A model generated the notes under the pieces. The model made no database searches. It worked only from the letters and a program-made list of their open reading frames with translations, and was not told the origin of the DNA. Positions 35,910-60,672 of a stretch of DNA of 64,000 nucleotides are shown in pieces; the stretch's first letter is position 1; every line of letters begins with the position of its first letter. Source of the DNA: Paramoeba atlantica (taxonomy: Eukaryota; Protista; Discosea); NCBI GenBank assembly GCA_977017575.1, contig CDRNVI010000048.1:124001-188000 (forward strand), in the 5' to 3' direction. The position numbers were made by a program, and so were the translations under genes.

Positions 35910-36956
35910 CTGGCTCGGAAACATGCGAAATATGTAAAATCAACTATGTTGCGAAATGATCAATTTCAATGCCTCCCTATATTGTCCTGCGGGGCTCTCC
36001 ACAATAACACAAAATCTCTACTACAGCTCCTGGCGGAAAAGGTCTACCGCGAACCCAAGGCGATTCTGAATGATTTTGTGCTTCTTCAACAGGAATTGAA
36101 TGGAGCGATAGTCCAGGGGCAATTGCGTAGCTACTTGCCGGATCCGAAAGATGAGTATGCTTATTAGAGTCGAGTCCGAGTCTGGACTTATTTGGTGGAT
36201 AAGGTAGTAATAGGAAGAAGTGGAAATGGTAGGAGGATAAATTAGGAATACGAAAAAAAAAGATATTTTATGTATAAAACGGGAAGAACACCAAAAAAAA
36301 AATCCCGAAAGTCTGAAGAATGACGGATCATATGTCCCACCAGTTTTGCTACGTCCAACATTTGATTGCGATAGCTCGTGGACGATGGTGAAATCGTAGT
36401 ATACATCTCCGCTTGCCCAATGAATCACGATATCTGGGCCCGAATGATAAAAAGATCCGGATCCGCAGGTTCTTTGGTGATGGGATTTGCCGTCGCCATC
36501 TACGCTTGCTCCACATTTTGCGCAAGTATAGGTGGAGAACTGTCTGGGTTCAAGCTCACAGGGCAGACCTGATTTTATGCATAATTCATAAATATTCCGA
36601 ACCATCCTGTTGTGCTTTGCCGTTGCGTTATTGCCTGAACATTTGACGCACCCGGACACGTGCGTGAGCGCTGTATGGGGGGTAAGTAATGCATGGCACC
36701 CTGGACACTGTAAATTGGAGGGGAGGCTCGGATGTGCAATCCCAATGCGTGGCATAACTGCTAACTTGAAAAGTCGCGTAGGTACAAGTCTAGAATTTGA
36801 GGTGAGCCATGAATAGTTACCTTTGGAGCTAGCTGCTCGTATTATGTGGGCTTGCGTTTTGTCTGTCATTAATTTGTCCCGTATGTCGTTGTGGTAGAGT
36901 TCCTCGGTGACTTCTTCTTTTTTTTTTTGCGGGTATGGCTGTTGTATATACGACAT
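35910..36956 (-). mobile_element. CRE-clade 3' fragment (Zn knuckle plus RLE) whose last ~440 bp are inverted
   Basis: Minus strand 36956-36350 reads CPGC..H..C, GPDIVIHW..YYDFTIVHELSQSNVGRS. The continuation RKHAKYV..QELNG..QLRSYL is on the plus strand at 35910-36167. Confidence 0.75.
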
Positions 36957-37271
36957 TCCTCATACTTTCGAAGGGGGGCGTATTCCATTATAATCTTCCT
37001 CATTCCTGCGGCATTCATGCGCTTTTGAAGGGGGAGTCTGCGGTATACATATGAAATACAATCACTATTTTACACAAGTTTACATATTATAAAGGAACCT
37101 AATATTCTGATCTGCGTATTAGGAGGAAGAGGAGGATGGGAGTAGCTCGGCTAGCGCATCGTCTTTGGCTAGGAAAGAGCAAGCAACTAGGTGGAAGAAT
37201 CAAAGTGAAAGAAGAAGCAAAGTGAGAGAAGACTGGGGGAGGGAGAGTATGCGAACACACTTAGTGACCTT

Positions 37272-37589
37272 CTAGAAGCGAAGTCCACCTATCCAGTTAT
37301 CCTTCGGAATGTACTCACGTAGTTGAGATACCACCGTGTATGCGGACATCTTTTCAATCTCAAGTTGAAATCCCTGTCGTACATTGTCGTAGTTCATTTT
37401 TGCGCGCTGCGCTATTGCCTTCAAAAGTGCCTTGGTGTCATTGTGTAGAAGGCCACAGTCTGAGGTGGCCAGACAACGGAAGTATTCACTATCGACACCC
37501 TTTTCGGAGACATATTTCTTGATTTTTCGATCGATCGCTTGTTGTATGAGTGCTGAACTGGTCTGTTTCGCGTAACTGTTGCAACAGGT
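37272..37589 (-). mobile_element. Short 3'-terminal fragment of a CRE-clade element (W.GGL-ending type)
   Basis: My translation: TCCNSYAKQTSSALIQQAIDRKIKKYV..FQLEIEKMSAYTVVSQLREYIPKDNWIGGLRF*. Confidence 0.8.
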
Positions 37590-37623
37590 AGATTTCTTCG
37601 TATTTCTTTTGTTAAAAAAACGA

Positions 37624-39200
37624 TTAATGAATGAACACTATTGTGGTATTCTTGATTTATCGTGTATTCAAAATTCACCGTTAAAGATTTCCTATTTTTT
37701 TAACGCACCTCGCTGACGGCATTCAACTGGTATTCACAGGGCCGTTTCATCTCAATCGACCGGTGCCAAGTATTTCCTAAATTGAGACATTGCGACCGAA
37801 CCATTCAGTTCTTGCAATTGCAAAGCGAAATCCTGGTGAATCTTATCGCGTGCCAGTCCACATGCATCTGCAAGAGCCGACAATAATTCCTTGGTGTTTG
37901 GATGCATGGCGCCTCCAGAAAGCATGGGAATGCACAAAAACTGCTGTGTCGGAATTAAGCTCGACACGACGTACCGGTTAATCTTACGCTTGATAGCGTC
38001 TCGCATGAGAATTGCGCCGCTGCGTTTGATGTTGGATTGTGAAAGCTCGTGTATGACGGTAAAATCATGAAAGATGTCCCCGTCTGCCCAATGGATGACT
38101 AAATCTGGCCCGGAATGGTGGAATGAACCAGATCCGCAAGTCCTTTGGTGTGACGCTTTATTTTCACCGTCAACAGTGGTACCGCACTTTCCGCAGGTAT
38201 ATGTCGCGAATTGTCTAGGTTCGAGCTCGCAGGGAATGCCGGCCTTAATACATAGCGTATAGAGTTGACGCACCATTCTGTTGTGTTTTGTGGTAGCGTT
38301 AATCCCAGAACATTTAACGCATCCGGACACGTGAGCAATTGCGCTGCTGGAGGTGAGGAGAACGTGGCACCCAGGACATTGTACCTTCGATGGTAGCAAC
38401 GGATGCTCTATTCCGAAACGGGGCATTATCGCCAACGTGAAAAGTCGCGAAGGAATGAATTTGGTGCAAGCGGTGAGCCAATTGTAATTCCCTTTCGCAC
38501 TGGCCACACGAATGATATCAGCCTGACCCTTGTCTTTCATCAAAGACTCGCGCACTGCATTGTGGTGGACTTCTTCCGTAACCGCTTCATCAGTGAGAGG
38601 TCGTTGGCTGGAGAGCGAGTTCAGCGCTGGCAAATCCATTACAGTAGCGGGAGCTGAAAGATGAATTGGTCGCTCCATAGCTGCTCGTTTGGATTTGAAG
38701 AACGCTGCTTCGCGAATCGGTTCAGTTGGGGTGAGCCCGAGTCCTCCTTTCTTCAGTGGTAGCCTCATCCATGATATTTGGTCTTCGTTGAGGTTCCCGA
38801 ACCATGAACATAGCGTGTTTGCCACCTGGGAATCAAACTGCCGACTGAGTTCCAAAGACGCATCAGGATGATGCACGCGTATGTCGTACTTGTGACGCAT
38901 ATTCACGCAGTGCGATAGTAAAACGATAGAGACGTTGCTGGCCCCCATGTGCTGTAGGCGCCGGAAAGCTGCTTGATGCTTCACAACTTTTTGGACTAAT
39001 TTTTCGCTAACGCTTTCTTTCTCTCCGACGAAGGCCCCCAAAATGTTGGTAGCCCGGCTTTCGGATAAAACTCCCGCCTCCTGCAAGACGTGCGGAATGG
39101 GGATTCTTTCGATGCCTTCAAACCAGACGCATTTTGTTGGGGATAATTCCACTAGCTTAGCAGTCAATAAAACTCGAAGACGGTTGTAAGATTGTTCTTT
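37624..39200 (-). mobile_element. 5'-truncated CRE-clade copy (late RT, Zn knuckle, RLE, 3' UTR)
   Basis: KCVWF..NILGAFVG..LPLKKGGLGL..CPGC..GPDLVIHW..HDFTVIHE..KRKINRY. Confidence 0.85.
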
Positions 39201-39202
39201 TG

Positions 39203-39620
39203 TTAATGAATGAACACTATTGTGGTATTCTTGATTTATCGTGTATTCAAAATTCACCGTTAAAGATTTCCTATTTTTTTTAACGCACCTCGCTAACGGC
39301 ATTCAACTGGTATTCACCGGGCCGTTTCATCTCCATCGACCGGTGCCAAGTATTTCCTAAATTGAGACATTGCGACCGAACCATTCAGTTCTTGCAATTG
39401 CAAAGCGAAATCCTGGTGAATCTTATCGCGTGCCAGTCCACATGCATCTGCAAGAGCCGACAATAATTCCTTGGTGTTTGGATGCATGGCGCCTCCAGAA
39501 AGCATGGGAATGCACAAAAACTGCTGTGTCGGAATTAAGCTCGACACGACGTACCGGTTAATCTTACGCTTGATAGCGTCTCGCATGAGAATTGCGCCGC
39601 TGCGTTTGATGTTGGATTGT
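39203..39620 (-). repeat. Near-identical ~418-bp tandem copy of the 3' end of the adjacent element
   Basis: Matches 37624-38040. This copy keeps GGA (ending ..DGDETAR*) where the long copy has TGA. Confidence 0.9.
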
Positions 39621-39743
39621 AGCGTTTCTTGTCGTGATCATACTTGACTCCCAGGAATTCATATGATGTCGCATTACATGATTCGGTGTCTTTGAAAGTC
39701 ACATCTAGCAATGGTCAAAAACGCCTTCGATGAGTACTCATAC

Positions 39744-39843
39744 AAAAAGGTTGATCTTACAAAAAGGTTGATCTTACTTTATAAAAAGTGTGTTCTTTAT
39801 AAAAGTGTGTTCTCTATAAAAAGTGTGTTCTTTATAAAAAGTG
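39744..39843. repeat. 17-18-bp minisatellite (AAAAAGGTTGATCTTAC x2, then ATAAAAAGTGTGTTCTTT x~3.5)
   Basis: Read directly from the sequence. Confidence 0.85.
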
Positions 39844-40207
39844 AATCAAAATCTCAAATTCAAGTTCGTTGACTACTGTGAGATCAATCAATTTATTTGA
39901 TTAGTCAAATGGGCATGTGTATGATTGTTCCTAATGCATTGTAATTTTCAATAGGCAAAAATTTTAATAAAATTATATTTAATTTAATTTGAGGAATTCG
40001 CAAAGCATATTTTCAATCAGGAGTTGAAATCAGGGTTGAAGAGAGGCGGTACGAGAAGGAAAAGTGGATGGAGTCGCGTGGGTAGTGTTGTCGCAGCGAG
40101 CTTTGTGTTAGGATAAAATGAGAATAATAATAACAAGTAGAGCATTGCTGCGACCACTTGCGGACTGATATATATATATATATATATGTATGTGGTACTA
40201 GAGTCGA

Positions 40208-41460
40208 TCAATGATTTAGTCCGCCAAGCCATTGTGCTGATGGAACGTACTTTCGAAGTTGCGTTGCAATGGTATATGCATTCATCTTCTCAATCTCGAG
40301 CAGGAAGGCTTCTTTCACGACTTTAACGTCTTGTTGTGATCGTTGGGCCAATAGAGACAAAAGGGTTTTCGTGTTTTTGTGTAGCTGCCCTAATTCGGTC
40401 ATTGCCAGGCAGCTGAAACTTTCTTCTCGAATTCCTCCTTGCAGGACGTATTTCTTGTGTTTACGGTCAAGAGCATTCTGCATTAACTGTTCTGTGGAGG
40501 ACTTGGTGTAGCTAGGGGCACAACTGTGAACAACGGTGACGTCGTAGAGAATTTCTCCTGCATGAGACCACATAATGCCTAGGTCGGGACCGGAGCGTAT
40601 GCGCCTGGCTCTGCATGGGTGATTTTCGGAGAGCTCGTCAGAGACTGTTGCCTTACATTTAGTGCAGAAGAATGATGAATGTACTCTTGGCTCTACAACG
40701 TGAGCTAACCCTGCTTTGGCACACAGTTCTCCTAAGAAACGAACTAATCTTGTGTGTTTCTTTGTCGCATTGATTCCACAGCATTGCGTGCATCCAGGTA
40801 TATGTTGAAATATCGTGTCGGACGTATGTTCTGACAGGCATCCTGGGCACACGACTGTTTTTGGCATATTGTTGGGCACGATTCCTAGGCGCATCATTAT
40901 ACAAAATCGGAAGAGATATGGATTTATGTAATTGCTGGTTGAATATAGATGTTGAAAAGATGATGATCCTCGTTCCATCAGTTCGCTGAGGCGTTTATCC
41001 TTTTTGAGCTCGGTCGCAGTGCGTTTTTGCTCGGCTCGGATCGCTTTCATGGCCATTCGCTTGGATGTATCGTTTGTCAGGTTGGCGTGTTCGCTTTTGG
41101 TTCTGATTCGCTTGGATCCCGCAGTGACCACCGGAGCGTTGTAGGATTTTGATTGCTCTTCAATGGCCTTGCGAGAGGCAAGGAAAAAGGTGCTTTTGTT
41201 TCAAGCATGACGGCGTGAGCCCGAGTCCCCCAAGATACTGTGGTAGAGTTGTTAGAGTTGTAGATGGGCCCGTCGAATTAAACCAAAGTTCAATGATACT
41301 CGTAACCTCTGCATCAAAGCGTTGTGCTAGTTCGAGAGTGGCGTCAGGTTTGTGGACTCGTAGATGGTAGTCCTGACGGGGGATCGTGCAGCGATTCAGA
41401 ATTGCTAAGGAGAGGTTGCTTGGTCCATGAGTGAGCTGGCACGCACACGAAGTTTGAAAG
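40208..41460 (-). mobile_element. 5'-truncated, frameshifted CRE-clade copy
   Basis: MGPSNLSLAILNRCTIPRQDYHLR..LGGLGL, then CPGC, GPDLGIMW..YDVTVVH..RKHKKY..WLGGL. Confidence 0.85.
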
Positions 41461-41863
41461 CGCCAGACCAAGTTTTTTTTTAACTCTAAATCCTACCTCT
41501 CCATCCAAATCTGTCAACCACTATGACCTTGAACTTTTGAAAAACCTTTAAAACCCGTAGTCCTCCCCACTGTTCTTGTGAGGAAGGTATTGCCGAAGCT
41601 GCGAGTGGGCAGCTGCCCCGTTTAACTCCTGTAGATACAATTTGAATTCTGAAATCACGGACATACGCGGAAGTTGGCCCCTATCCGCCAGCGTCTTGAG
41701 AAGATTTTCTGTATTGCGATGCAGCGCTCCACCGGAAAGCAAGGGAAGGCATTCAAATTTGTTTCCCGGTATTAAACCCGAATTGACGTACGTTACTTGC
41801 TTTCGTTTGATCGCATCTTGCATCAAGCGATGGCCGCGCTTGCCTTGATTGGAGGGGCTTAAC

Positions 41864-43978
41864 TCATAGCGTTATGTCGTCCATGTAAGCGCGCACTGTA
41901 ACGTCTGGGAACGATTCCGCGATTTCTTTGAGTGAGTTTTGAATGAGGGCGCAAAAATATAGAGACGAGAGGACAGAGCCTTGCCGAACTCCGGAGGAAC
42001 TTTTCACTATTGTATGGAGTGTGTTGTTGGTGAAGAAAAGTAGGTCAGAAGGCTCTCCGTATTCCAAATTGAAGATGCGCATAAATGGTTTAAAGATGTT
42101 GTTGTGAGTTAGTGCCTCAGATATTGCTTGACGGGAAGGGGTGTTGTATGCGTTTTTGTAGTCAACTGTTAGAATGGCGTGCCCCTTGTCGTATTCATCG
42201 ATGAGTTCGTGGACAATACCTTCGCAGGCGTTCTTTTGCAGAATTCCTCGTTGCTCAGGCTCAAAGAATTTCTTGAGTTTTTCTTCGTTTCGGTTTAATA
42301 GAATAGACCCACATATCTTTAGCAGAGTTTCTCCGATTGCGATTGGTCTTATTCCGTTTTCTGGTTTGTTGATTGCCATGAGCCGGCATCGAGTCAATCT
42401 TTCGCGTACCGACGGTGCGATGTCTCCGTTTACCATGTCTCGCAGCATATGACACAGAGCCGTGCTAGATTCTTCGTCATCTGCTAGTAGACGCAACATA
42501 GCCTCGCTCAAACCTGTTGGGCCTGGGGAGGCTCCCGGGGCCAACTTTTCAATTGCTGCTCGGAGTTCGTGTTTTTCGATAATCCCGGTTCGTGGATATT
42601 GGGCTGACGTGAGACTAGGACGTTCTCCCTCCGGGTGTAGATCCTTAAGCTCTGCTACCTTTTCGTCAATGCTGAGATTCGTGTCTAGATATATGTTGTC
42701 GAGGATGCGGGTGGCTTTGCTCAAGTTTCCAGCTCTAGCTGTCCGTAGCGCGGAACGTATTGAGCGTTGGTCGGCCTCACGTTCTATTTTCTCATCTTGT
42801 GTGGTGAGGAACTCGTCCTTGCGTGTTGATCTGGTTTTCGGGTTGCTGTACTTTCGCTGGATCGCTTGCCGTACAGTAGCGAGTGAATCACGTGGTGCGT
42901 TAAGAAATTTGTGCCAGACAGAGGTTTTTTCTGATGCGAGATGCAGCGCGGGATATCCTCGTAAGATCTCTCTAAAGATTGCTACGACGTGGGATGCGAA
43001 TGTCGGGTCTATGTCGGTGAAGGAGGGGAGTGGTTCTAGGTCGCCGCCTGCGTCATAATCTTGTACTTCGCCCAGATCTAACTGTGTCGATTGCGTAGCG
43101 ATACGATTTAGTTTTATTGCGCGTAGTCGAAAAATATTTATCTTGTGTGATGCGGGTAGGTAGAGAAATCCTGATGGACCTGAACCATTTTTCGGTGTGT
43201 AGGATATCTTCACCCTAACTGTGCCTTTCCGGGAATGGCGTGACACAACATCTCCGATAGAGTGAAAGACTTCATCGCAGTGTCTGAATTTCCAATGCAC
43301 TTCGCAGGTAGATCCTTTTCCCCATTGGCTTATAATTTTCACGACCTGATCGGGGGTCTTTAATGTGCTTGCTGCGAGATCGGTCAAAGTCAGCATGTCG
43401 TCGTCCGAAATGTCTGGTCCACTTGTGCATGAGTCACTTGAGTCTTGCTCGTCCTGTGACATGTCTGCTTCTGCATGCTTCGCTTGCTGATGAGCTGGTG
43501 AGTTGGTAGTGCGAAGTATAACTTTGACTTTCTTTGGAGTTTGCTTTTTGTTTTTATGTGTGGTATTTTCTTTTCTGATCTTTATTTTAAATGCGGAGGG
43601 GTCTGATAGAGCTTGATCTGAGCTTTTGTTTCTTTGAACACTCGCGAAAGTAGCCTCTTCGCCGTACTCTTTGTGTTGGCCGGTATCTGCGGTTGGATTT
43701 TTCTCGATGCTGAGAGCGGCTTTCTCTGATTTCTCTGCCCAGTGCTGGGGTATATGTTGTGGAATGGAGGTCGTGTACTTGAGTTCGTCGTAGTTGCTGG
43801 TTGCTTGAATGAGTTTGTCGTTGGCTTTGAACTGGTCCCATGAACCAATCTCATGTCTATTCGCTTCTTCGGTGAAGTTCAAGTTGTTCTCCTGTACGCC
43901 AGTGCTCCTAACAGTTGCAGTGGTCTGCCGATTCTCCGACGGCGTACGTTGCGCCGCCCGCGAGGAAGGAACTGACAT
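41864..43978 (-). CDS. LsmAD - linker - non-LTR reverse transcriptase (truncated), 704 aa
   Basis: WDQFKAN..SNYDELKYTT..EEATFASVQR (LsmAD); PGPTG, RPIAIGE, VDYKNAYNT, GVRQGSVLS, YMDD (RT). Confidence 0.85.
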   Translation of the reverse strand: MSVPSSRAAQRTPSENRQTTATVRSTGVQENNLNFTEEANRHEIGSWDQFKANDKLIQATSNYDELKYTTSIPQHIPQHWAEKSEKAALSIEKNPTADTGQHKEYGEEATFASVQRNKSSDQALSDPSAFKIKIRKENTTHKNKKQTPKKVKVILRTTNSPAHQQAKHAEADMSQDEQDSSDSCTSGPDISDDDMLTLTDLAASTLKTPDQVVKIISQWGKGSTCEVHWKFRHCDEVFHSIGDVVSRHSRKGTVRVKISYTPKNGSGPSGFLYLPASHKINIFRLRAIKLNRIATQSTQLDLGEVQDYDAGGDLEPLPSFTDIDPTFASHVVAIFREILRGYPALHLASEKTSVWHKFLNAPRDSLATVRQAIQRKYSNPKTRSTRKDEFLTTQDEKIEREADQRSIRSALRTARAGNLSKATRILDNIYLDTNLSIDEKVAELKDLHPEGERPSLTSAQYPRTGIIEKHELRAAIEKLAPGASPGPTGLSEAMLRLLADDEESSTALCHMLRDMVNGDIAPSVRERLTRCRLMAINKPENGIRPIAIGETLLKICGSILLNRNEEKLKKFFEPEQRGILQKNACEGIVHELIDEYDKGHAILTVDYKNAYNTPSRQAISEALTHNNIFKPFMRIFNLEYGEPSDLLFFTNNTLHTIVKSSSGVRQGSVLSSLYFCALIQNSLKEIAESFPDVTVRAYMDDITL

Positions 43979-44010
43979 AAAAGAGTTTAAAGTAGTAGTA
44001 AAGAAAAAGT

Positions 44011-44048
44011 CAACAAGGTACAGAAATTCAACAAGGTACAGAAACTGT
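44011..44048 (-). repeat. Tandem spliced-leader relics (20 nt plus 16 nt)
   Basis: Minus strand reads ACAGTTTCTGTACCTTGTTG-AA-TTTCTGTACCTTGTTG-actttttc..ATG. Confidence 0.9.
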
Positions 44049-45846: not shown

Positions 45847-46880
45847 TTAGTGTTCAAGTCCTCCGAGCCACTGAATTGGTGGAAAGTATTGTCGGAGTTG
45901 CGTGGCAATTGTGTACGCGTTCATCTTCTCTATTTCAAGTTGGAACGCTTCTTTGACATCCTTCACGTTTTGTTGTGACCGTTGTGCGAGCGAGACAATG
46001 AGAGTTTTCGTGTTGTTGTGCAACTGTCCTAATTCGGTCATTGCCAAGCAGCTGAAACTTTCTTTCGGTATGCCCCCTTGTACAACGTATTTTTTGTGCT
46101 TGCGCTCAAGGGCATTTTGGATTAACTGCTCGACGGAGGTTTTGGCATAGCTCGGGGCACAACTGTGAACTACGGTGACATCGTAGAGAATTTCTCCGAG
46201 ATGGGACCACATGATACCGAGATCAGGGCCTGATCGCATACGTCTTGCTCTGCATGGGTGATGTTCAGAGAGCTCTTCGGATATGGTGGCCTTACATTTG
46301 GTGCAGAAGAATGATGAATGTACTCGAGGTTCTATAACATGGGGCACCCCTGCTTTGGCACACAATTCACCTAGGAAACGGACTAATCGTGTGTGCTTCT
46401 TCGTTGCATTTATCCCACAGCATTGTGTACATCCAGGAATGTGCTGGAAGATGGTATCAGAAGAATATTCTGTCAGGCATCCCGGGCATACCACACTCTT
46501 AGGCATATTTTCTGGCACTATTCCCAGGTGCATCATTATACAGAAACGGAAGAGGTACGGATTGATGTAGTTGCTGGTTGATTGCAGGTGGTGAAATGAT
46601 GCGGATCCTCGCTCCATTAGTTCTTTGAGGCGCATGTCCTTTCTCAGCTCGGTTGCAAATCGTTTTTGTTCAGATCGTATTGCTTTCATGACTAATCGCT
46701 TGGAAGTATCATTCTTCTGGCTGTCACGTTCGTTCAGAGCCCTGTTTCGCTTGGATCCCGCTATGACCACCGGAGCGTTATTGGTTTTGGATTGCTCTTC
46801 AATGGCTTTGCGAGACACTTAGAAAAAGTGCTTTTGCTTCAAACATGACGGAGTAAGTCCGAGTCCGCCGACGTACACCA
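45847..46880 (-). mobile_element. 5'-truncated CRE-clade copy, close paralogue of 40208-41460
   Basis: Shares NYINPYLFRFCIMM, CTQCCGINATKKHTRLVRFLGELC, GPDLGIMW and WLGGL. Confidence 0.85.
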
Positions 46881-55013: not shown

Positions 55014-58000
55014 TTATAGACTGAATTCCTGCGTAGCGCCTTCTTCGTTTAGGTATTTCCGAAGGTGGGAATAAACTTCTAGACCATTTAATTCCTGCAC
55101 CAGTAGTTTAAATTCCTGTTCAACCCTCTGCCGGTCTAGTAAGGCGGCATCTGCTATCGCATGGATCAGACTTTGCGTGTTGCGATGTAAAGAACCTCCG
55201 GACAGAACAGGCAAGCATTGAAAGCATTCTTCTCGTATAATATTCGTCTGCACGTACGTGTTATGTTTCCTTTTGATCGCGTCGTTGATTAGTTGGATGC
55301 ATTTTTTAGACCTATTGCTCTGCGAAAGCTCGTGTATTACGGTTAAGTCATAGTATACCTCGCCGTTGTTCCAATAAATAACGAGATCCGGTCCGGATCG
55401 GCATAGCCGTCTTCCAGTGCAAACTTTCTGATGAGTTACGTGATTGCTTGGACTAATTATATCTCTGCACTGCAGACATTTCCATGACGAGAAAGCTCTG
55501 GGTTCCTTTTCACATGGCAATCCAGCTTTGTGGCATAGTCGCTGTAGAAATGTAACAAGTGCATTGTGCTTCGCCGTTGAATTGAATCCTGAGCATTGAA
55601 CGCATCCTGGGATATGTGACAGAGCATTCCGATTGTCGAGAACAATGCCACATCCCGGGCAAAGAAGGTTGGTCGGAAGATTTTGATGTTGAGCATTTAG
55701 CCTAGGCATAACCGCAAGCTTAAATAGGTGTGACGGTATACTTCGTACATGTGACGTGAGCCAGTCGTTGTTGCCTTTGAAAGAAGTGGCTTGAAGTATG
55801 GGCTTAAGTTCGGGATTTAGCAGCAATTCTTTCCAATCCTTTTCATGTTGAATCACGTTGGATGTTTCGTCGTCAACAGGTGTAATTTTTAGACTAGATT
55901 TCTTTGGAATGCATTTGTGTGCAGCTGTGGTGTTTGTTACAGTCCGAGCTGAAGATCTTTGGCGCTCAAGAACTGAAAAACGCGAAGCAGCGTACGCATT
56001 CGCTCTATTGGGATTACTGGCTGTTAATCCGAAACCCCCTTTTTTGAATGGAAGACGGATGATTTTCTTTCGATTTGATGATAACGGCCCGAACCAGGCT
56101 TCCACGACATCCTCGACTTTTTGATCAAACTCCGCAGTAGCAGTGTCTGTGGTGTCCGCTTCGTGAACGCGCATGAGGTATTGCAGTCTAATGTTTACGC
56201 ATTTAGACAGCAGCAGAAGAGAAATATTATTTATACCCATTTTCTTTAGCCGCCTAAACCCGTCATCATGTTTGTTTACCTGTCGAAGGAGCCTTTCACT
56301 AATCGACTCGTTTTCACCTATGTGAGCACCCAGTATCTTAATGGCATCGGATTCTGTTTTAAGACCTTGCTGTTGAAGAGACCATGGTATGGAGTTTCCT
56401 GACATTCCCTGAAACCACACACACTTCGTCTCGGCGAGACTCACCCGTTTCTGCTTGAGAAGATCTCTAAGTCGGAAAAACACCGTTTCTAATTCGTTAG
56501 GGTCTCGCGAAACCAGAGTTATATCGTCGATGTAAGCGTTGATTTCTACACCAGGGAATTCCATGGCCAACGTTTCAAGGATCGGCTGACAAAATACACA
56601 AAAGTATAGACTTGCTAAGGCAGAACCTTGTCGTACTCCAGCGGAACTCGGTATAATGCTCGCTAAATTGCCATCAGAACCGAAATACAGCAGGTCAGAG
56701 GGTTCGGAGTATTCGGCGGTGAAGAACCTCTGGAAAGGTTTGAGTGTTGCAAATGCAAAGACGCTTTTGGCCATTTCGGTCCTTGAAGGGGTGTTAAATG
56801 CATTCCTCATGTCGACAGATAGAATCGTGTGACCGTCTCGATATCGGTCGCGTAGCTTGTGGACGATTCTTTCACACCCCGCCTGCGAAAACACCCCCTG
56901 TTGCATTGGAGAGAAAAGGGGTTCCAGCGTTTTTTCATACCTCTGCAGCAATATCAGGCCGGCTAGCTTACCAAATATTTCGCCAATCGCTACAGGCCGA
57001 ACTCCTCCGTCGGGTTTTGCTATTGCAACCAGACGGGCCCGATTAAGTCTTTGCATCACTTGGCGTGAAAGAAATCCGTTGATCAGGTCCCCCATCATGT
57101 GACACATACTCCCACAACATGGCTCGTCGTCAACCAGTAGTCTAATAACACTATCCGTTGTTCCTGTGGGACCCGGGCTGACGCCTTTCGCCAACCGTTT
57201 GCTGGCGCTGCGAATTTCGATCGGCGAAACTGCAGCTATGATGGGTGCATCTTCGGGTACGTTAAATTTGCTGTTTTGTTCCGGATGCAGGTCTCGCAGC
57301 TTTTGTATGGTTTCTTGGTCTGTAAGTGACTTATTCTGAAACGAACGATCGAGTACTTTACATGCTTTGGAAACGCAGCCTTCTAAGGCAAGACGTGTTA
57401 CTCTCTTGATGGCTCTTCGGTCCTCTTTCGCTACTACTTCTTCTTCCGCCTTGTCGTCATTAAACGGGTCTCGTAGAGGTCTTCGGCGTCTTTGTCTGAC
57501 ACTGGATTGACGGACCTCTGCAAGAGACAGTTTCATAGCAGACAGAACTTGGTTCCATATTTTGTTCCTTTGCGGATAGTCGCTTTGATGGTACGGTTGC
57601 ATAATGTCTCGATATATGGCAAGTATTCGCGGAATGAAGTCTGGACTAATTGTTTTGGCCGTGGGAATCGGAAGGTGGTCAACGTCGTCGCCTTTCCAGT
57701 CACTCACATTGAAACCTAAACTGTTGAATGTGGTATCTTCGTGTGATTGTTCGTCGCTTTCATCCAACTCTGGCGGCGTTATGTGCCACCGTAGGTGAAA
57801 GATCCGTACGTTTTCTTGAGGCGGAAGGAAGCCGTCGAAATATTCGCTTGCATGATGGCCTTTGATACCTCTGTACCGAAGAGTGATCTTCTTCTTGTTA
57901 GCTCTGCGATTTGTTTTTGTAACGACACCCTCCGATATGTTGATTTTCGTTTGCCTGTCGAAAGTCCAAGCGATAGTGCACGTCGCTCCGTTTTTGATGT

Positions 58001-59621
58001 GAGATAGTGATTGGATGATGTCATTGGAGGTGATGGGGAACTCTGTTTCCGGTTTTATGGCTCCGATAATGTTCTCGAAGACTTCGCCATTTATTCCATC
58101 GCAAAATGTGATCGCGGAACCTCTCTGTATTTCGTCAGCTATGTCCACAGGAATAGGTGGTAGTGGGGTTTCAAGGGCTGCGCCGCGAGTCGGAGACTCA
58201 CAGTCGTGAAATTCAACATCTTTGTCTATAGACTCTTCTGCTCCTGTACTCTTTTCCGTAATTGGAGTCGGGGTAGCGTCAGTGTCATTGTTGAGATCGT
58301 CGGCCGGGGATGGTGTCATCGGTTTTCCGGGAAGCTGTTCTAGCATGGTTTTTCTTCGAATTCCTAGTTGCTCTCTAGGAACATCGTTCTCGGCAACGGT
58401 TTGTGCTGTGTCTATCTGTTCTTTGTATCTCCGTCGAAGATTTTCCATCATCAAGGAGGATGGATTTAGTGGGCGCATGACAAGTTCATTAAGGGTTTCC
58501 GGATCCTTCGGTGGGGGGGTGGCTGCGTCCGCGTAAGTCGGTTCTGTACTACAGTTGGTAAAGGCAGTTACTTTTGCAGTGTTAGTTTTTAGCATGACGC
58601 TCCCTTCTGGATGTCGAAGTGTCGGGTTGCTGTTCTCGTGTTCTTTACTTTGTTGTACTAAATTCAACTGTTTGTTCCGTCGACTAAAAAAGCTGGACGA
58701 GAGGAGCGAGTTCTTGAATCGAATACGGCAGTTGGATTTCGAATGTTTATCGACTTCTTTGCTGGCCATCCCATCGCTCGGTGGCATGTTTGGCGCTTCG
58801 CTGGATCTGTCTTGACATCTTGGGGAATGATTCATCGAACTCGTATGATTTTTAGCAGAATTTAGTGGATTATGGAGGTCTGGAGCTGATAACGGTGTCA
58901 GAGGTGGCAGCGACGGCGGTGGCAACGGCGGTGGCAAATCTGGCGATTCAGGGCTCGGGCGTGTAGTTTGCGTGGTGATGATTGCAGATAGTTGATGGCT
59001 CTCAGTTTGCATCGCCGTAACGCTGGCGCGGGCTTTCCGCGACAGCGCATGCATGCTCGATTGCGTAAAGGGTGTGACCTGCACCAGTGCAGCTGGAGTG
59101 GACGGCGGAGCAAGTAAAGGTGGCGGCGCAGCGCAATGGGACGGCGGCGGCTGTGGCGGCAGGGTCTCAGGAGCTTTATTTTTTTGCCGCGAAGGTGGCG
59201 ATCGCTGCGGCGGCGGCGGCGACTGTTGCGGTGTTGTGGTCGCTGGAGGCTCTGGACTGTTGCGGTGGTGGAGGCGCTGGTGGCCTGAGCACGTGGAGGG
59301 TGTGACCTGCACCAGTGCAGCGGGAGGCGGCAGCGGCGGCGCAATGGGGGGGAACGGAGGCGCAGCGGGAGAGCAGACGTCGCAGAGAGGCAACGCAGCA
59401 GATTGTATAATCCGTGGCGGCGACTGTGGCAAATCCTCAGAAGGTTTCTTTTTTTGCCCCGAATGTGGCGATCGCTGCTGCAGCGGTGGCGAATGTTGCG
59501 GTGTTGTGGGCGGCAGCCCCACTTCAAGCGTTTTCTTCTTCCCTCGTCGGGATGGCGGCAGCGGTACAACCTCTGGAGCTACTCCAGTGTCCTTCGCCCT
59601 GCTCCGCGTGAACATTCCCAT
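55014..59621 (-). CDS. CRE-clade polyprotein (Pro-rich N-terminus, RT, Zn knuckle, restriction-like endonuclease), 1535 aa
   Basis: SPGPTG, RLVAIAKPDGGVRPVAIGE, VDMRNAFN, GVRQGSALAS, YIDD; CPGC..H..C; GPDLVIYW..YYDLTVIHE..KRKHNTY. Confidence 0.92.
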   Translation of the reverse strand: MGMFTRSRAKDTGVAPEVVPLPPSRRGKKKTLEVGLPPTTPQHSPPLQQRSPHSGQKKKPSEDLPQSPPRIIQSAALPLCDVCSPAAPPFPPIAPPLPPPAALVQVTPSTCSGHQRLHHRNSPEPPATTTPQQSPPPPQRSPPSRQKNKAPETLPPQPPPSHCAAPPPLLAPPSTPAALVQVTPFTQSSMHALSRKARASVTAMQTESHQLSAIITTQTTRPSPESPDLPPPLPPPSLPPLTPLSAPDLHNPLNSAKNHTSSMNHSPRCQDRSSEAPNMPPSDGMASKEVDKHSKSNCRIRFKNSLLSSSFFSRRNKQLNLVQQSKEHENSNPTLRHPEGSVMLKTNTAKVTAFTNCSTEPTYADAATPPPKDPETLNELVMRPLNPSSLMMENLRRRYKEQIDTAQTVAENDVPREQLGIRRKTMLEQLPGKPMTPSPADDLNNDTDATPTPITEKSTGAEESIDKDVEFHDCESPTRGAALETPLPPIPVDIADEIQRGSAITFCDGINGEVFENIIGAIKPETEFPITSNDIIQSLSHIKNGATCTIAWTFDRQTKINISEGVVTKTNRRANKKKITLRYRGIKGHHASEYFDGFLPPQENVRIFHLRWHITPPELDESDEQSHEDTTFNSLGFNVSDWKGDDVDHLPIPTAKTISPDFIPRILAIYRDIMQPYHQSDYPQRNKIWNQVLSAMKLSLAEVRQSSVRQRRRRPLRDPFNDDKAEEEVVAKEDRRAIKRVTRLALEGCVSKACKVLDRSFQNKSLTDQETIQKLRDLHPEQNSKFNVPEDAPIIAAVSPIEIRSASKRLAKGVSPGPTGTTDSVIRLLVDDEPCCGSMCHMMGDLINGFLSRQVMQRLNRARLVAIAKPDGGVRPVAIGEIFGKLAGLILLQRYEKTLEPLFSPMQQGVFSQAGCERIVHKLRDRYRDGHTILSVDMRNAFNTPSRTEMAKSVFAFATLKPFQRFFTAEYSEPSDLLYFGSDGNLASIIPSSAGVRQGSALASLYFCVFCQPILETLAMEFPGVEINAYIDDITLVSRDPNELETVFFRLRDLLKQKRVSLAETKCVWFQGMSGNSIPWSLQQQGLKTESDAIKILGAHIGENESISERLLRQVNKHDDGFRRLKKMGINNISLLLLSKCVNIRLQYLMRVHEADTTDTATAEFDQKVEDVVEAWFGPLSSNRKKIIRLPFKKGGFGLTASNPNRANAYAASRFSVLERQRSSARTVTNTTAAHKCIPKKSSLKITPVDDETSNVIQHEKDWKELLLNPELKPILQATSFKGNNDWLTSHVRSIPSHLFKLAVMPRLNAQHQNLPTNLLCPGCGIVLDNRNALSHIPGCVQCSGFNSTAKHNALVTFLQRLCHKAGLPCEKEPRAFSSWKCLQCRDIISPSNHVTHQKVCTGRRLCRSGPDLVIYWNNGEVYYDLTVIHELSQSNRSKKCIQLINDAIKRKHNTYVQTNIIREECFQCLPVLSGGSLHRNTQSLIHAIADAALLDRQRVEQEFKLLVQELNGLEVYSHLRKYLNEEGATQEFSL

Positions 59622-59649
59622 TAAGTAAAAGTAAAAAGTAAACAACAAG

Positions 59650-60330: not shown

Positions 60331-60381
60331 TAATTATTTTTCTTCATTTCAATTACTTTTCAGGCACGAGCCTCCCCCCCT

Positions 60382-60672
60382 ATGCCCGACGCCGACAAAA
60401 CGACGACCCATTCCACGACACACCCCGAAGCAAAGCAAGAATCAAACTTTGGTGACGAGGCCGCCTCACACGAATTGGGTTCTTGGGATCAATTTGAAGC
60501 GAACAAACACCTCACGATCGGGGAAAGCACATATGATGAGGCGCTGTATACTACTAAACTTCCTGACGATCTTCCGCCGGAATTGACACAGCGATCCGAA
60601 GAAATCGCTCGAAGTATCATCAAATCGCGCGCAGGCCCTACACCAGATACGGGGAACGTTGAAGGAATGTCT
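60382..60672 (+). pseudogene. 5' fragment of a second LsmAD-type element
   Basis: NFGDEAASHELGSWDQFEAN..STYDEALYTTKL..EEIARSI..PTPDTG aligns to the N-terminus of the 704-aa ORF. Confidence 0.8.

Follow-up and report, generated by a model that had tools for sequence, protein, structure and literature searches.

A 64,000-nucleotide stretch of the Paramoeba atlantica genome (GenBank assembly GCA_977017575.1, contig CDRNVI010000048.1, positions 124,001 to 188,000; referred to below as the window) carries on its minus strand, at 41864–43978, an ATG-started open reading frame (ORF) of 704 amino acids in which a segment resembling the LsmAD domain found in ataxin-2 and yeast Pbp1 (aa 47–116) and a reverse transcriptase (RT; aa 536–704) share one frame. 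This arrangement had been claimed in an earlier note made from the sequence alone, and both reading of the ORF and a Pfam search confirmed it. With E values up to 10 allowed, Pfam returned only two families for the whole ORF, RVT_1 and LsmAD (PF06741). RVT_1 was matched at aa 536–704 (41867–42373, minus strand) with an E value of 6.6e-16, over profile positions 1–158 of 205. This N-terminal three-quarters of the RT domain holds the motifs PGPTG, RPIAIGE, GVRQG and YMDD, the last of which (aa 698–701) is the YxDD catalytic motif of RTs; the domain is cut short just past this point, with a stop right after YMDDITL. The ORF represents the 5' two-thirds of an LsmAD-bearing non-long terminal repeat (non-LTR) retrotransposon encoding an RT and a restriction-like endonuclease (RLE). 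The note was therefore right to see an LsmAD as the N-terminal module of an RT–RLE ORF, but the 704-aa frame is not a complete element, being interrupted after YMDD.

The module itself spans aa 37–116 (43631–43870, minus strand) and consists of the core W-D-Q-F..N..S.YDE..YTT...A..IE...EE..F.SV, preceded by an extension, E-x3-H-x2-G-S, that alignment showed to be common to the PBP1 of the host. Within the whole ORF, Pfam aligned LsmAD to aa 60–112 at 14.8 bits. When aa 40–120 were excised and searched with PF06741, as the note had suggested, the match covered profile positions 4–71 of 72 at 22.3 bits (E = 1.9e-4), a near-full-length alignment in which the conserved W-D-Q-F..N / S-T-Y-D-E..Y-T-T / A..I / E-E..S.V positions are present. 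This score nevertheless falls under the curated gathering threshold of 25 bits for PF06741, as do all those obtained for the excised window module (21.7–22.3 bits) and its 98% siblings (20.9 bits), and the LsmAD call from the flagged copy and its signature by itself is only suggestive. No SM-ATX (Lsm) domain was found in the ORF by Pfam at E up to 10, in line with the note, and none in the full-length relatives; PAM2 was likewise found neither in the ORF (E up to 10) nor in the full-length relatives (E up to 0.01). Across the elements, LsmAD begins 15–70 aa past the start codon. An AlphaFold2 (AF2) model of the module showed five short helices and no compact fold (pLDDT 71, pTM 0.29), which is compatible with a flexible LsmAD and not discriminating, and a sequence search for a solved LsmAD structure with the module profile returned only chance matches at E > 0.3.

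By profile comparison, the module is a genuine LsmAD homolog, with homology established at the level of the family. At least 150 places in the 45.7-Mb genome match the first 160 aa of the window ORF at 34–100% identity (288 candidates seen), approximately 70 of them in open frames of 1150–1480 aa, and the families that carry the module number at least 14, from two deep RT lineages. A genome search with Pfam LsmAD placed more than 80 element places over the 25-bit cut-off, reaching up to 37.5 bits; two identical top matches of 53.4 bits represent the host PBP1, for which locus L031 has both SM-ATX and LsmAD. Above-threshold LsmAD and RVT_1 are found together in the full-length ORFs of L059 (1401 aa, LsmAD at 28.9 bits) and L042 (1446 aa, 27.1 bits), and RVT_1 E values in full-length relatives range from 1e-13 to 7e-21. 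The genome search for LsmAD and RT in one ORF that the note had proposed thus revealed a family trait.

For the reciprocal comparison, the module from the window copy was aligned with those from 16 diverged families that are 33–61% identical to it (alignment A1). Invariant in this alignment are H, G, W, Q, F, N, L, S, Y-T-T, P, T-D-G and E, and all 17 modules match Pfam LsmAD and no other family (best E = 9.6e-9). An element-only profile run against 1.84 billion representative proteins gave 1359 matches at E ≤ 1e-3. The 63 matches that were checked, next after the top 36 and with E values of 5e-13 to 2e-9, are ordinary ataxin-2/PBP1 proteins: LsmAD was present in 62/63, SM-ATX in 39/63 and PAM2 in 6/63. 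Their near-invariant positions (W, Q, F, N, E, Y-T-T, A, A, I, E-E and V) largely coincide with the positions conserved in the elements. The identification of a true LsmAD in the note is upheld by these searches. The window stretch is also present on contigs of three public DNA runs, and near-identical proteins occur in the independent ENA assembly ERZ24900291, from the same or a near organism; given these and the number of genomic places, a chimera or misassembly is therefore excluded.

Full-length members of the window family could be recognized elsewhere in the genome. Two copies, at C47:28812 in an open frame of 1223 aa and at C47:55741 in one of 1239 aa, share 98–99% identity with the first 160 aa of the window ORF. 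A 307-aa ORF in the window (40211–41131) is 98% identical to C47:31494–32414, which belongs to the 1223-aa open frame that also contains the LsmAD at C47:28812, itself 98% identical to that of the window copy. This LsmAD and the 3' part share one frame, and there is therefore at least one open full-length family member with LsmAD, RT and RLE. From L041, the closest full-length relative read (52% identical to the window ORF over aa 22–704), and from lineage alignments, the element order is LsmAD, a basic-then-acidic linker, a beta-rich domain of ~80 aa, RT and a CCHC/RLE domain. In translation, the low-complexity linker of the window copy (43379–43630, minus strand) reads as a basic patch, KIKIRKE..KKQTPKKVKVILR, and then a stretch that is acidic and rich in Ser and Asp, and it is poorly conserved between families. 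The beta-rich domain (aa 201–308; 43055–43378, minus strand) appears from AF2 and alignment to be an SH3-like beta-barrel with the motif WGKGxxC..W.F. The C-terminal motifs CPGC-x12-H-x3-C, (R/K)H(N/T), RSGPDL-x14-D-V-T-V-V-H and a later K/R..Y are conserved in both lineages and present at 40211–41131; on these motifs, the C-terminal domain is assigned as CCHC plus a PD-(D/E)XK restriction-like endonuclease.

The window copy is dead: a fragment of another element breaks up its RT, and there is a frameshift in its 3' part. On the minus strand, an interruption of ~440 nt (41427–41863) stands in place of ~97 element codons; it was mapped by tblastn, by an ORF at 41548–41826 and by spacing relative to the intact C47 copy, its exact boundaries being inferred. 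It contains a ~95-codon 3'-terminal fragment (41548–41868) of another, LsmAD-less family resembling the element at 55017–59648. Beyond it, on the same strand, lies the element's own 3' part (40208–41426), comprising the RT end, CCHC and PD-(D/E)XK RLE, with a frameshift near 41186.

Origin of the module and its spread among elements

The host PBP1 LsmAD scored 84 bits on the element-only profile, and the best other ataxin-2 in the large library scored 65 bits. Host and element LsmADs share traits absent elsewhere: the E-x3-H-x2-G-S (H-x2-GSW) extension before WDQF, HL(I/V) instead of the usual LFGV, and YTTxIP instead of YTTKLD. The Bodo saltans LsmAD, taken from the supplementary material of PMC12898128, is without these shared features and clearly differs from that of the host. 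A careful maximum-likelihood tree was built from 65 LsmADs. In it, a branch with support 100/98 separates the 17 element modules, together with the host PBP1 and the metagenomic protein P0027, from the rest, and another with support 99/83 sets off the element modules by themselves; a quick tree agreed. The tree against host PBP1 that the note had called for thus favors a host-derived module. Because LsmAD is pan-eukaryotic in ataxin-2 and the RT fusion was found in this organism only, the direction of transfer is from host to element. A single capture from PBP1 mRNA of the host lineage, followed by spread, fits the data and is the simplest account; capture could have come about through a template switch onto PBP1 mRNA at the element RNA's 5' end, which the N-terminal position of the module fits.

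When compared with ataxin-2, Pbp1 and trypanosome PBP1, which combine SM-ATX, LsmAD and PAM2, the elements have a homologous LsmAD in which the near-invariant residues are kept and whose nearest counterpart is the host PBP1 LsmAD. The elements differ in having no SM-ATX, PAM2 or long disordered C terminus, in placing LsmAD at the extreme N terminus of an RT/endonuclease protein, and in carrying an element-specific TPDTG motif in the second half of the domain. The host PBP1 appears twice in the assembly with identical LsmADs, at L031 (C44:329205–332399) and L032 (C66:47048–50242). A third canonical-type LsmAD match, L033 (G000:C163:167722–170829), is split into parts of 43 and 31 bits ~117 nt apart in AT-rich low-complexity surroundings, and may be an intron-containing paralogue or another organism's sequence in the assembly.

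In a tree of the RT–RLE part, the elements formed two lineages (A and B) joined by very long branches. All 22 sampled elements of lineage B, which were sampled through LsmAD matches, carry the module. In lineage A it is carried by L041, which is in the tree, and by the window family and its 64% sister, which were placed by similarity; the window family is 52% identical to L041, and its RT is only ~25% identical to lineage B. Lineage A members without LsmAD are P0168–P0170 (54–57% identical to L041 in RT–RLE), P0175 from a JGI metagenome, and the element at 55017–59648 of the window (minus strand). The latter is an open 1544-aa RT–RLE frame with a Pro-rich N terminus, in which Pfam found RVT_1 only and the hidden Markov model of the element module gave no match even with filters off. 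The RT tree places this comparator in the same deep lineage as the window family, and the observation in the note that a sister family has a Pro-rich region in the place of LsmAD holds for it.

Trees of the LsmAD module and of the RT–RLE body disagree. By RT, L042 and L057 are sisters (support 99); the LsmAD data reject that pair (approximately unbiased test, p = 0.001, against L056, L059 and L060, with a post hoc choice of groups). This conflict, the presence of LsmAD in both lineages and the single clade formed by the element modules suggest that families exchanged their 5' modules, whether by recombination or by template switching, and/or that some families lost the module. Separately, an LsmAD-less P0169-like element without its 3' end was seen at L014 (G000:C147:55707–59168) to run in frame into a complete LsmAD-bearing element, giving an open frame of 2073 aa; a junction of this type could generate module exchange.

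Element class, downstream barrel and distribution

At 44010–44047 (minus strand), 32 nt upstream of the ATG of the window ORF, the 3' part of a kinetoplastid-type spliced leader has left two relics in tandem, CAGTTTCTGTACCTTGTTGA and then ATTTCTGTACCTTGTTGA. Only the 3' ~20 nt are spliced leader-like, sequence further upstream is not, and the window copy sits in a pile of element fragments, not in a spliced-leader array. In 28 loci whose sequence was retrieved (e.g. L042:237–248 and L057:298–309), the word CAGTTTCTGTAC, from the spliced-leader 3' part, closely precedes the ORF. Nearly every full-length element has the spliced-leader 3' part directly upstream of its start codon, and the tandem duplicate is seen in the window copy. 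The label "CRE-type" used in the note agrees with a single-ORF RT plus RLE with spliced-leader relics, and is based on those features. A word-index protein search with the RT–RLE part returned relatives, none of them labelled CRE, SLACS or CZAR.

One long ORF with RT followed by CCHC and PD-(D/E)XK RLE is common to the present elements, to CRE1/2, SLACS and CZAR, and to the wider RLE elements R2, NeSL, R4 and HERO; the 5' spliced-leader association and the presence of 5'-truncated copies are further points of likeness to CRE-type elements. A 2025 survey of trypanosomatid mobile elements characterizes CRE by RT, RLE and zinc-finger-like structures and does not mention LsmAD (PMC12278014). Described CRE elements have zinc-finger-like N-terminal structures and no LsmAD, whereas here the same position is taken by LsmAD or, in sister families, by a Pro-rich or other region. 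Many families also coexist here, and the likeness to CRE elements is one of architecture. Host domains have been captured by other long interspersed nuclear elements (LINEs), as in the RRM/coiled coil of L1 ORF1p and the esterase or PHD domains in CR1-like ORF1s. These cases share with the present one an accessory, non-enzymatic host-type module upstream of RT, presumably for ribonucleoprotein (RNP) formation or RNA fate; here, however, the module is fused inside the RT ORF rather than forming a separate ORF1, and its source is a regulator of messenger RNPs (mRNPs).

The ~80-aa barrel between LsmAD and RT has a confident AF2 fold (pLDDT 85, pTM 0.73). Its best PDB matches reach Z scores of 5–6 only, to bL19, Tudor and the EDC3 LSm domain, many SH3-like barrels being similar. 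According to the alignment, it is kept in all elements of the window RT lineage, with or without LsmAD, and it may be a nucleic-acid- or target-binding domain replacing the zinc fingers of other RLE elements. The barrel was also considered as a displaced Lsm domain; this was rejected by sequence (hhalign probability 0.45% against SM-ATX), the similarity at the fold level extending at Z 5–6 to many SH3-like barrels. An Atlas feature search for the barrel gave no usable match.

In protein-library, word-index and metagenome searches, no LsmAD–RT proteins were found beyond this genome and the ENA assembly ERZ24900291; the word-index protein search with the module gave a single match, from an ENA assembly. 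A scan of JGI metagenomes yielded 63 LsmAD loci, 0/63 with RT-like sequence nearby, and 42/63 had a same-strand Lsm domain and are ordinary ataxin-2 genes. Two JGI contigs (L064:2103–2219, Ga0169931_10110721, and L065:1284–1400, Ga0194126_10156361) carry an ORF that starts ~35–45 aa before an LsmAD segment 49–54% identical to the window module, with stop codons and no Lsm domain upstream; the contigs end before any RT could appear, and these cases are ambiguous.

LsmAD outside the classical ataxin-2 architecture is also present in Euglenozoa, in diplonemid proteins with PDZ, two LsmADs and RRM (Diplonema papillatum KAJ9472136.1 and Flectonema neradi). In contrast to the elements, these are host genes without RT, and their LsmADs form a separate clade (99 SH-aLRT) that is not sister to the element modules. 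Among the proteins examined, two tandem LsmADs were seen in P0014 (the D. papillatum protein, locus L063), P0023 (the F. neradi protein), P0025, P0026 and P0031, some with PDZ and/or RRM, and three LsmADs together with a protein kinase in P0034. The classical ataxin-2 architecture is thus not the only setting in which LsmAD occurs.

A 2026 survey of ataxin-2 chimeras makes no mention of reverse transcriptase or transposons in its text and supplements, and describes LsmAD as the unique hallmark of the ataxin-2 family, with no known function or interactor (PMC12898128). Our full-text literature search found no published LsmAD–RT fusion or LINE of such architecture, and the search on LsmAD plus retrotransposon gave no relevant paper, in agreement with the note, which knew of no LINE of this kind. 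By its sequence relationships, the host PBP1-derived LsmAD is a conserved N-terminal module of diversified, recently active RLE-type non-LTR retrotransposons, and as such is unreported as far as searched.

Selection on the module and its proposed role

Ratios of nonsynonymous to synonymous divergence (dN/dS) across copies of the domain, an estimate suggested in the note, were obtained by the NG86 method between subfamilies with unsaturated dS. Values for the module were 0.12 (L047/L048), 0.13 (L056/L059), 0.06 (L038/L059), 0.07 (L056/L060) and 0.22 (window family/its 64% sister), comparable with 0.09–0.14 for the RT–RLE part. Between distant families the module is 35–51% identical, as opposed to 24–28% for RT, and the linker is unalignable. 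On these estimates the module is under purifying selection. Several families contain copies with dS near 0–0.01 and open frames, indicating recent activity.

Published work on LsmAD bears on its possible function. LsmAD alone is flexible and helical, without a stable tertiary fold, and binds no RNA (Zhang et al. 2025, PMC11898529); it is therefore probably a docking peptide that folds on binding. In Drosophila, the Lsm/LsmAD region has been proposed as a site that accepts other RNA-binding proteins (PMC7946432), and in T. brucei, tethered PBP1, LSM12, XAC1 or MKT1 raises reporter mRNA expression (bioRxiv 10.1101/2020.03.02.973057). Given that the elements keep exactly the residues invariant in ataxin-2 LsmADs, the simplest interpretation is continued contact between the module and its ancestral partner. 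Taken as a whole, the best explanation of the LsmAD–RT–RLE fusion, and one we consider highly probable, is a module derived from host PBP1 that was captured once, spread and has been held by selection, with docking as its proposed role. The docking role taken separately, in which the module binds the ancestral partner of the PBP1 LsmAD and links the element RNP to the host mRNA-fate machinery, is plausible, although we rate it somewhat short of probable.

In detail, LsmAD would act as the fold-on-binding docking peptide, the element protein would bind its own trans-spliced mRNA in cis, and LsmAD would engage the partner of the PBP1 LsmAD within the PBP1/LSM12/XAC1/MKT1/PABP or DDX6 network. 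Tethering to this network would stabilize the element mRNA and activate its translation, as in trypanosomes, and the assembly, stability or translation of the element RNP would be favored. That LsmAD is an autonomous docking module of exactly this kind, still binding a PBP1 partner and plugging cis-bound element mRNA into an mRNA-activating PBP1 network, is rather doubtful. The note had inferred both the capture of a host mRNP module by a retrotransposon family and its use in recruiting translation or granule machinery; the capture stands, and the recruitment stays a proposal.

Several points weigh against the captured-and-selected explanation. The window copy is non-functional, and both it and its own family lie below the Pfam cut-off (20.9–22.3 bits). 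The assembly may hold haplotigs, as host PBP1 appears twice, and copy counts are perhaps inflated up to twofold. LsmAD-based sampling biases the prevalence of the module in lineage B upward, and the LsmAD tree was built on ~100 columns. The existence of close relatives without LsmAD (P0168–P0170 and the 55017–59648 element) indicates that transposition itself can proceed without the module. The window stretch was found in no public RNA run searched. With regard to the mechanism, yeast Mkt1 binds Pbp1 outside LsmAD, at aa 491–549 (PMC12345631), and an MKT1 route would thus have to be indirect. The LSM12 Pfam models PF09793 and PF21166 matched nothing in the genome, an uninformative result since the controls were also matchless. 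A complex prediction for element LsmAD and the host PBP1 Lsm domain scored 0.00 with an uncertain partner fold, and is evidence neither way.

Among the other explanations, a chance resemblance in a non-homologous stretch, or a junction produced by the assembly, had in its favor the sub-threshold score of the window copy; it is already refuted by the reciprocal profile search, the more than 80 places over threshold, the 150 or more junctions, the ENA proteins and the public-run contigs. A neutral passenger, that is, a 5'-transduced piece of PBP1 mRNA hitch-hiking without function on successful lineages, has in its favor that non-LTR elements acquire foreign 5' sequence through template switching and that the module is missing from some close RT relatives. 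It is nonetheless already disfavored, and we consider it very improbable: a passenger would not be expected to show module dN/dS values of 0.06–0.22, to form the best-conserved segment between two RT lineages whose linkers are unalignable, or to be kept in at least 14 families and apparently moved between them.

In the remaining alternatives, the module has a role other than recruitment. As a decoy or antagonist, the element LsmAD would compete with host PBP1 for its partner and so spare element RNA from PBP1- or DDX6-dependent repression or granule sequestration. The evidence for LsmAD identity serves this idea equally, the module is without Lsm and PAM2, the parts through which PBP1 contacts RNA and PABP, just as a competitor would be, and hundreds of copies could give a high dose; however, a decoy needs neither fusion to RT nor an N-terminal position in every family, and element proteins are usually scarce and act in cis, which makes it a poor candidate. 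A little less unlikely is a role internal to the element or unrelated to PBP1, such as nuclear import or localization, multimerization, or chaperoning together with the downstream barrel, the contact with a PBP1 partner having been lost. The second half of the module has indeed diverged, with TPDTG in place of the usual ...H..EERG... stretch, human LsmAD has been linked to Golgi/ER localization signals (PMC12898128), and a barrel of Tudor/Sm-like shape lies downstream in one lineage. Yet that barrel is also found without LsmAD, and the near-invariant ataxin-2 positions W, Q, F, N, Y-T-T, E-E and V are kept invariant in the elements, which argues that the ancestral contact surface has been retained.

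For transposon biology, the elements provide a documented case in which RLE-type non-LTR retrotransposons took up a domain from a host mRNP regulator, with a single origin, later exchange, strong purifying selection and recent activity, and they show how LINE-like elements may tune the fate of their own mRNA where gene control is purely post-transcriptional. For the ataxin-2 field, an LsmAD long kept without Lsm or PAM2 shows that selection can act on a function belonging to the domain itself. Dozens of natural variants are available in the elements to show where constraint lies (W, Q, F, N, S-x-Y, Y-T-T, E-E and V), and the question of the partner thereby becomes directly testable. If autonomous docking were true, they would be a natural separation-of-function experiment revealing the role of LsmAD in all eukaryotes.

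Neighboring elements in the window

Around the flagged copy, at 36357–41868 and 45853–46872 (minus strand), lie 3' fragments of several families, 5'-truncated and piled up on the same strand. A second, diverged LsmAD module, identified by tblastn on the plus strand at 60349–60672, is a 5' fragment of another family and agrees at 99% identity with the L050 element over the latter's first 108 aa. This module was also matched at C48:184364–184657 in the search with the first 160 aa of the window ORF and at C48:184523–184633 in the Pfam LsmAD genome search.

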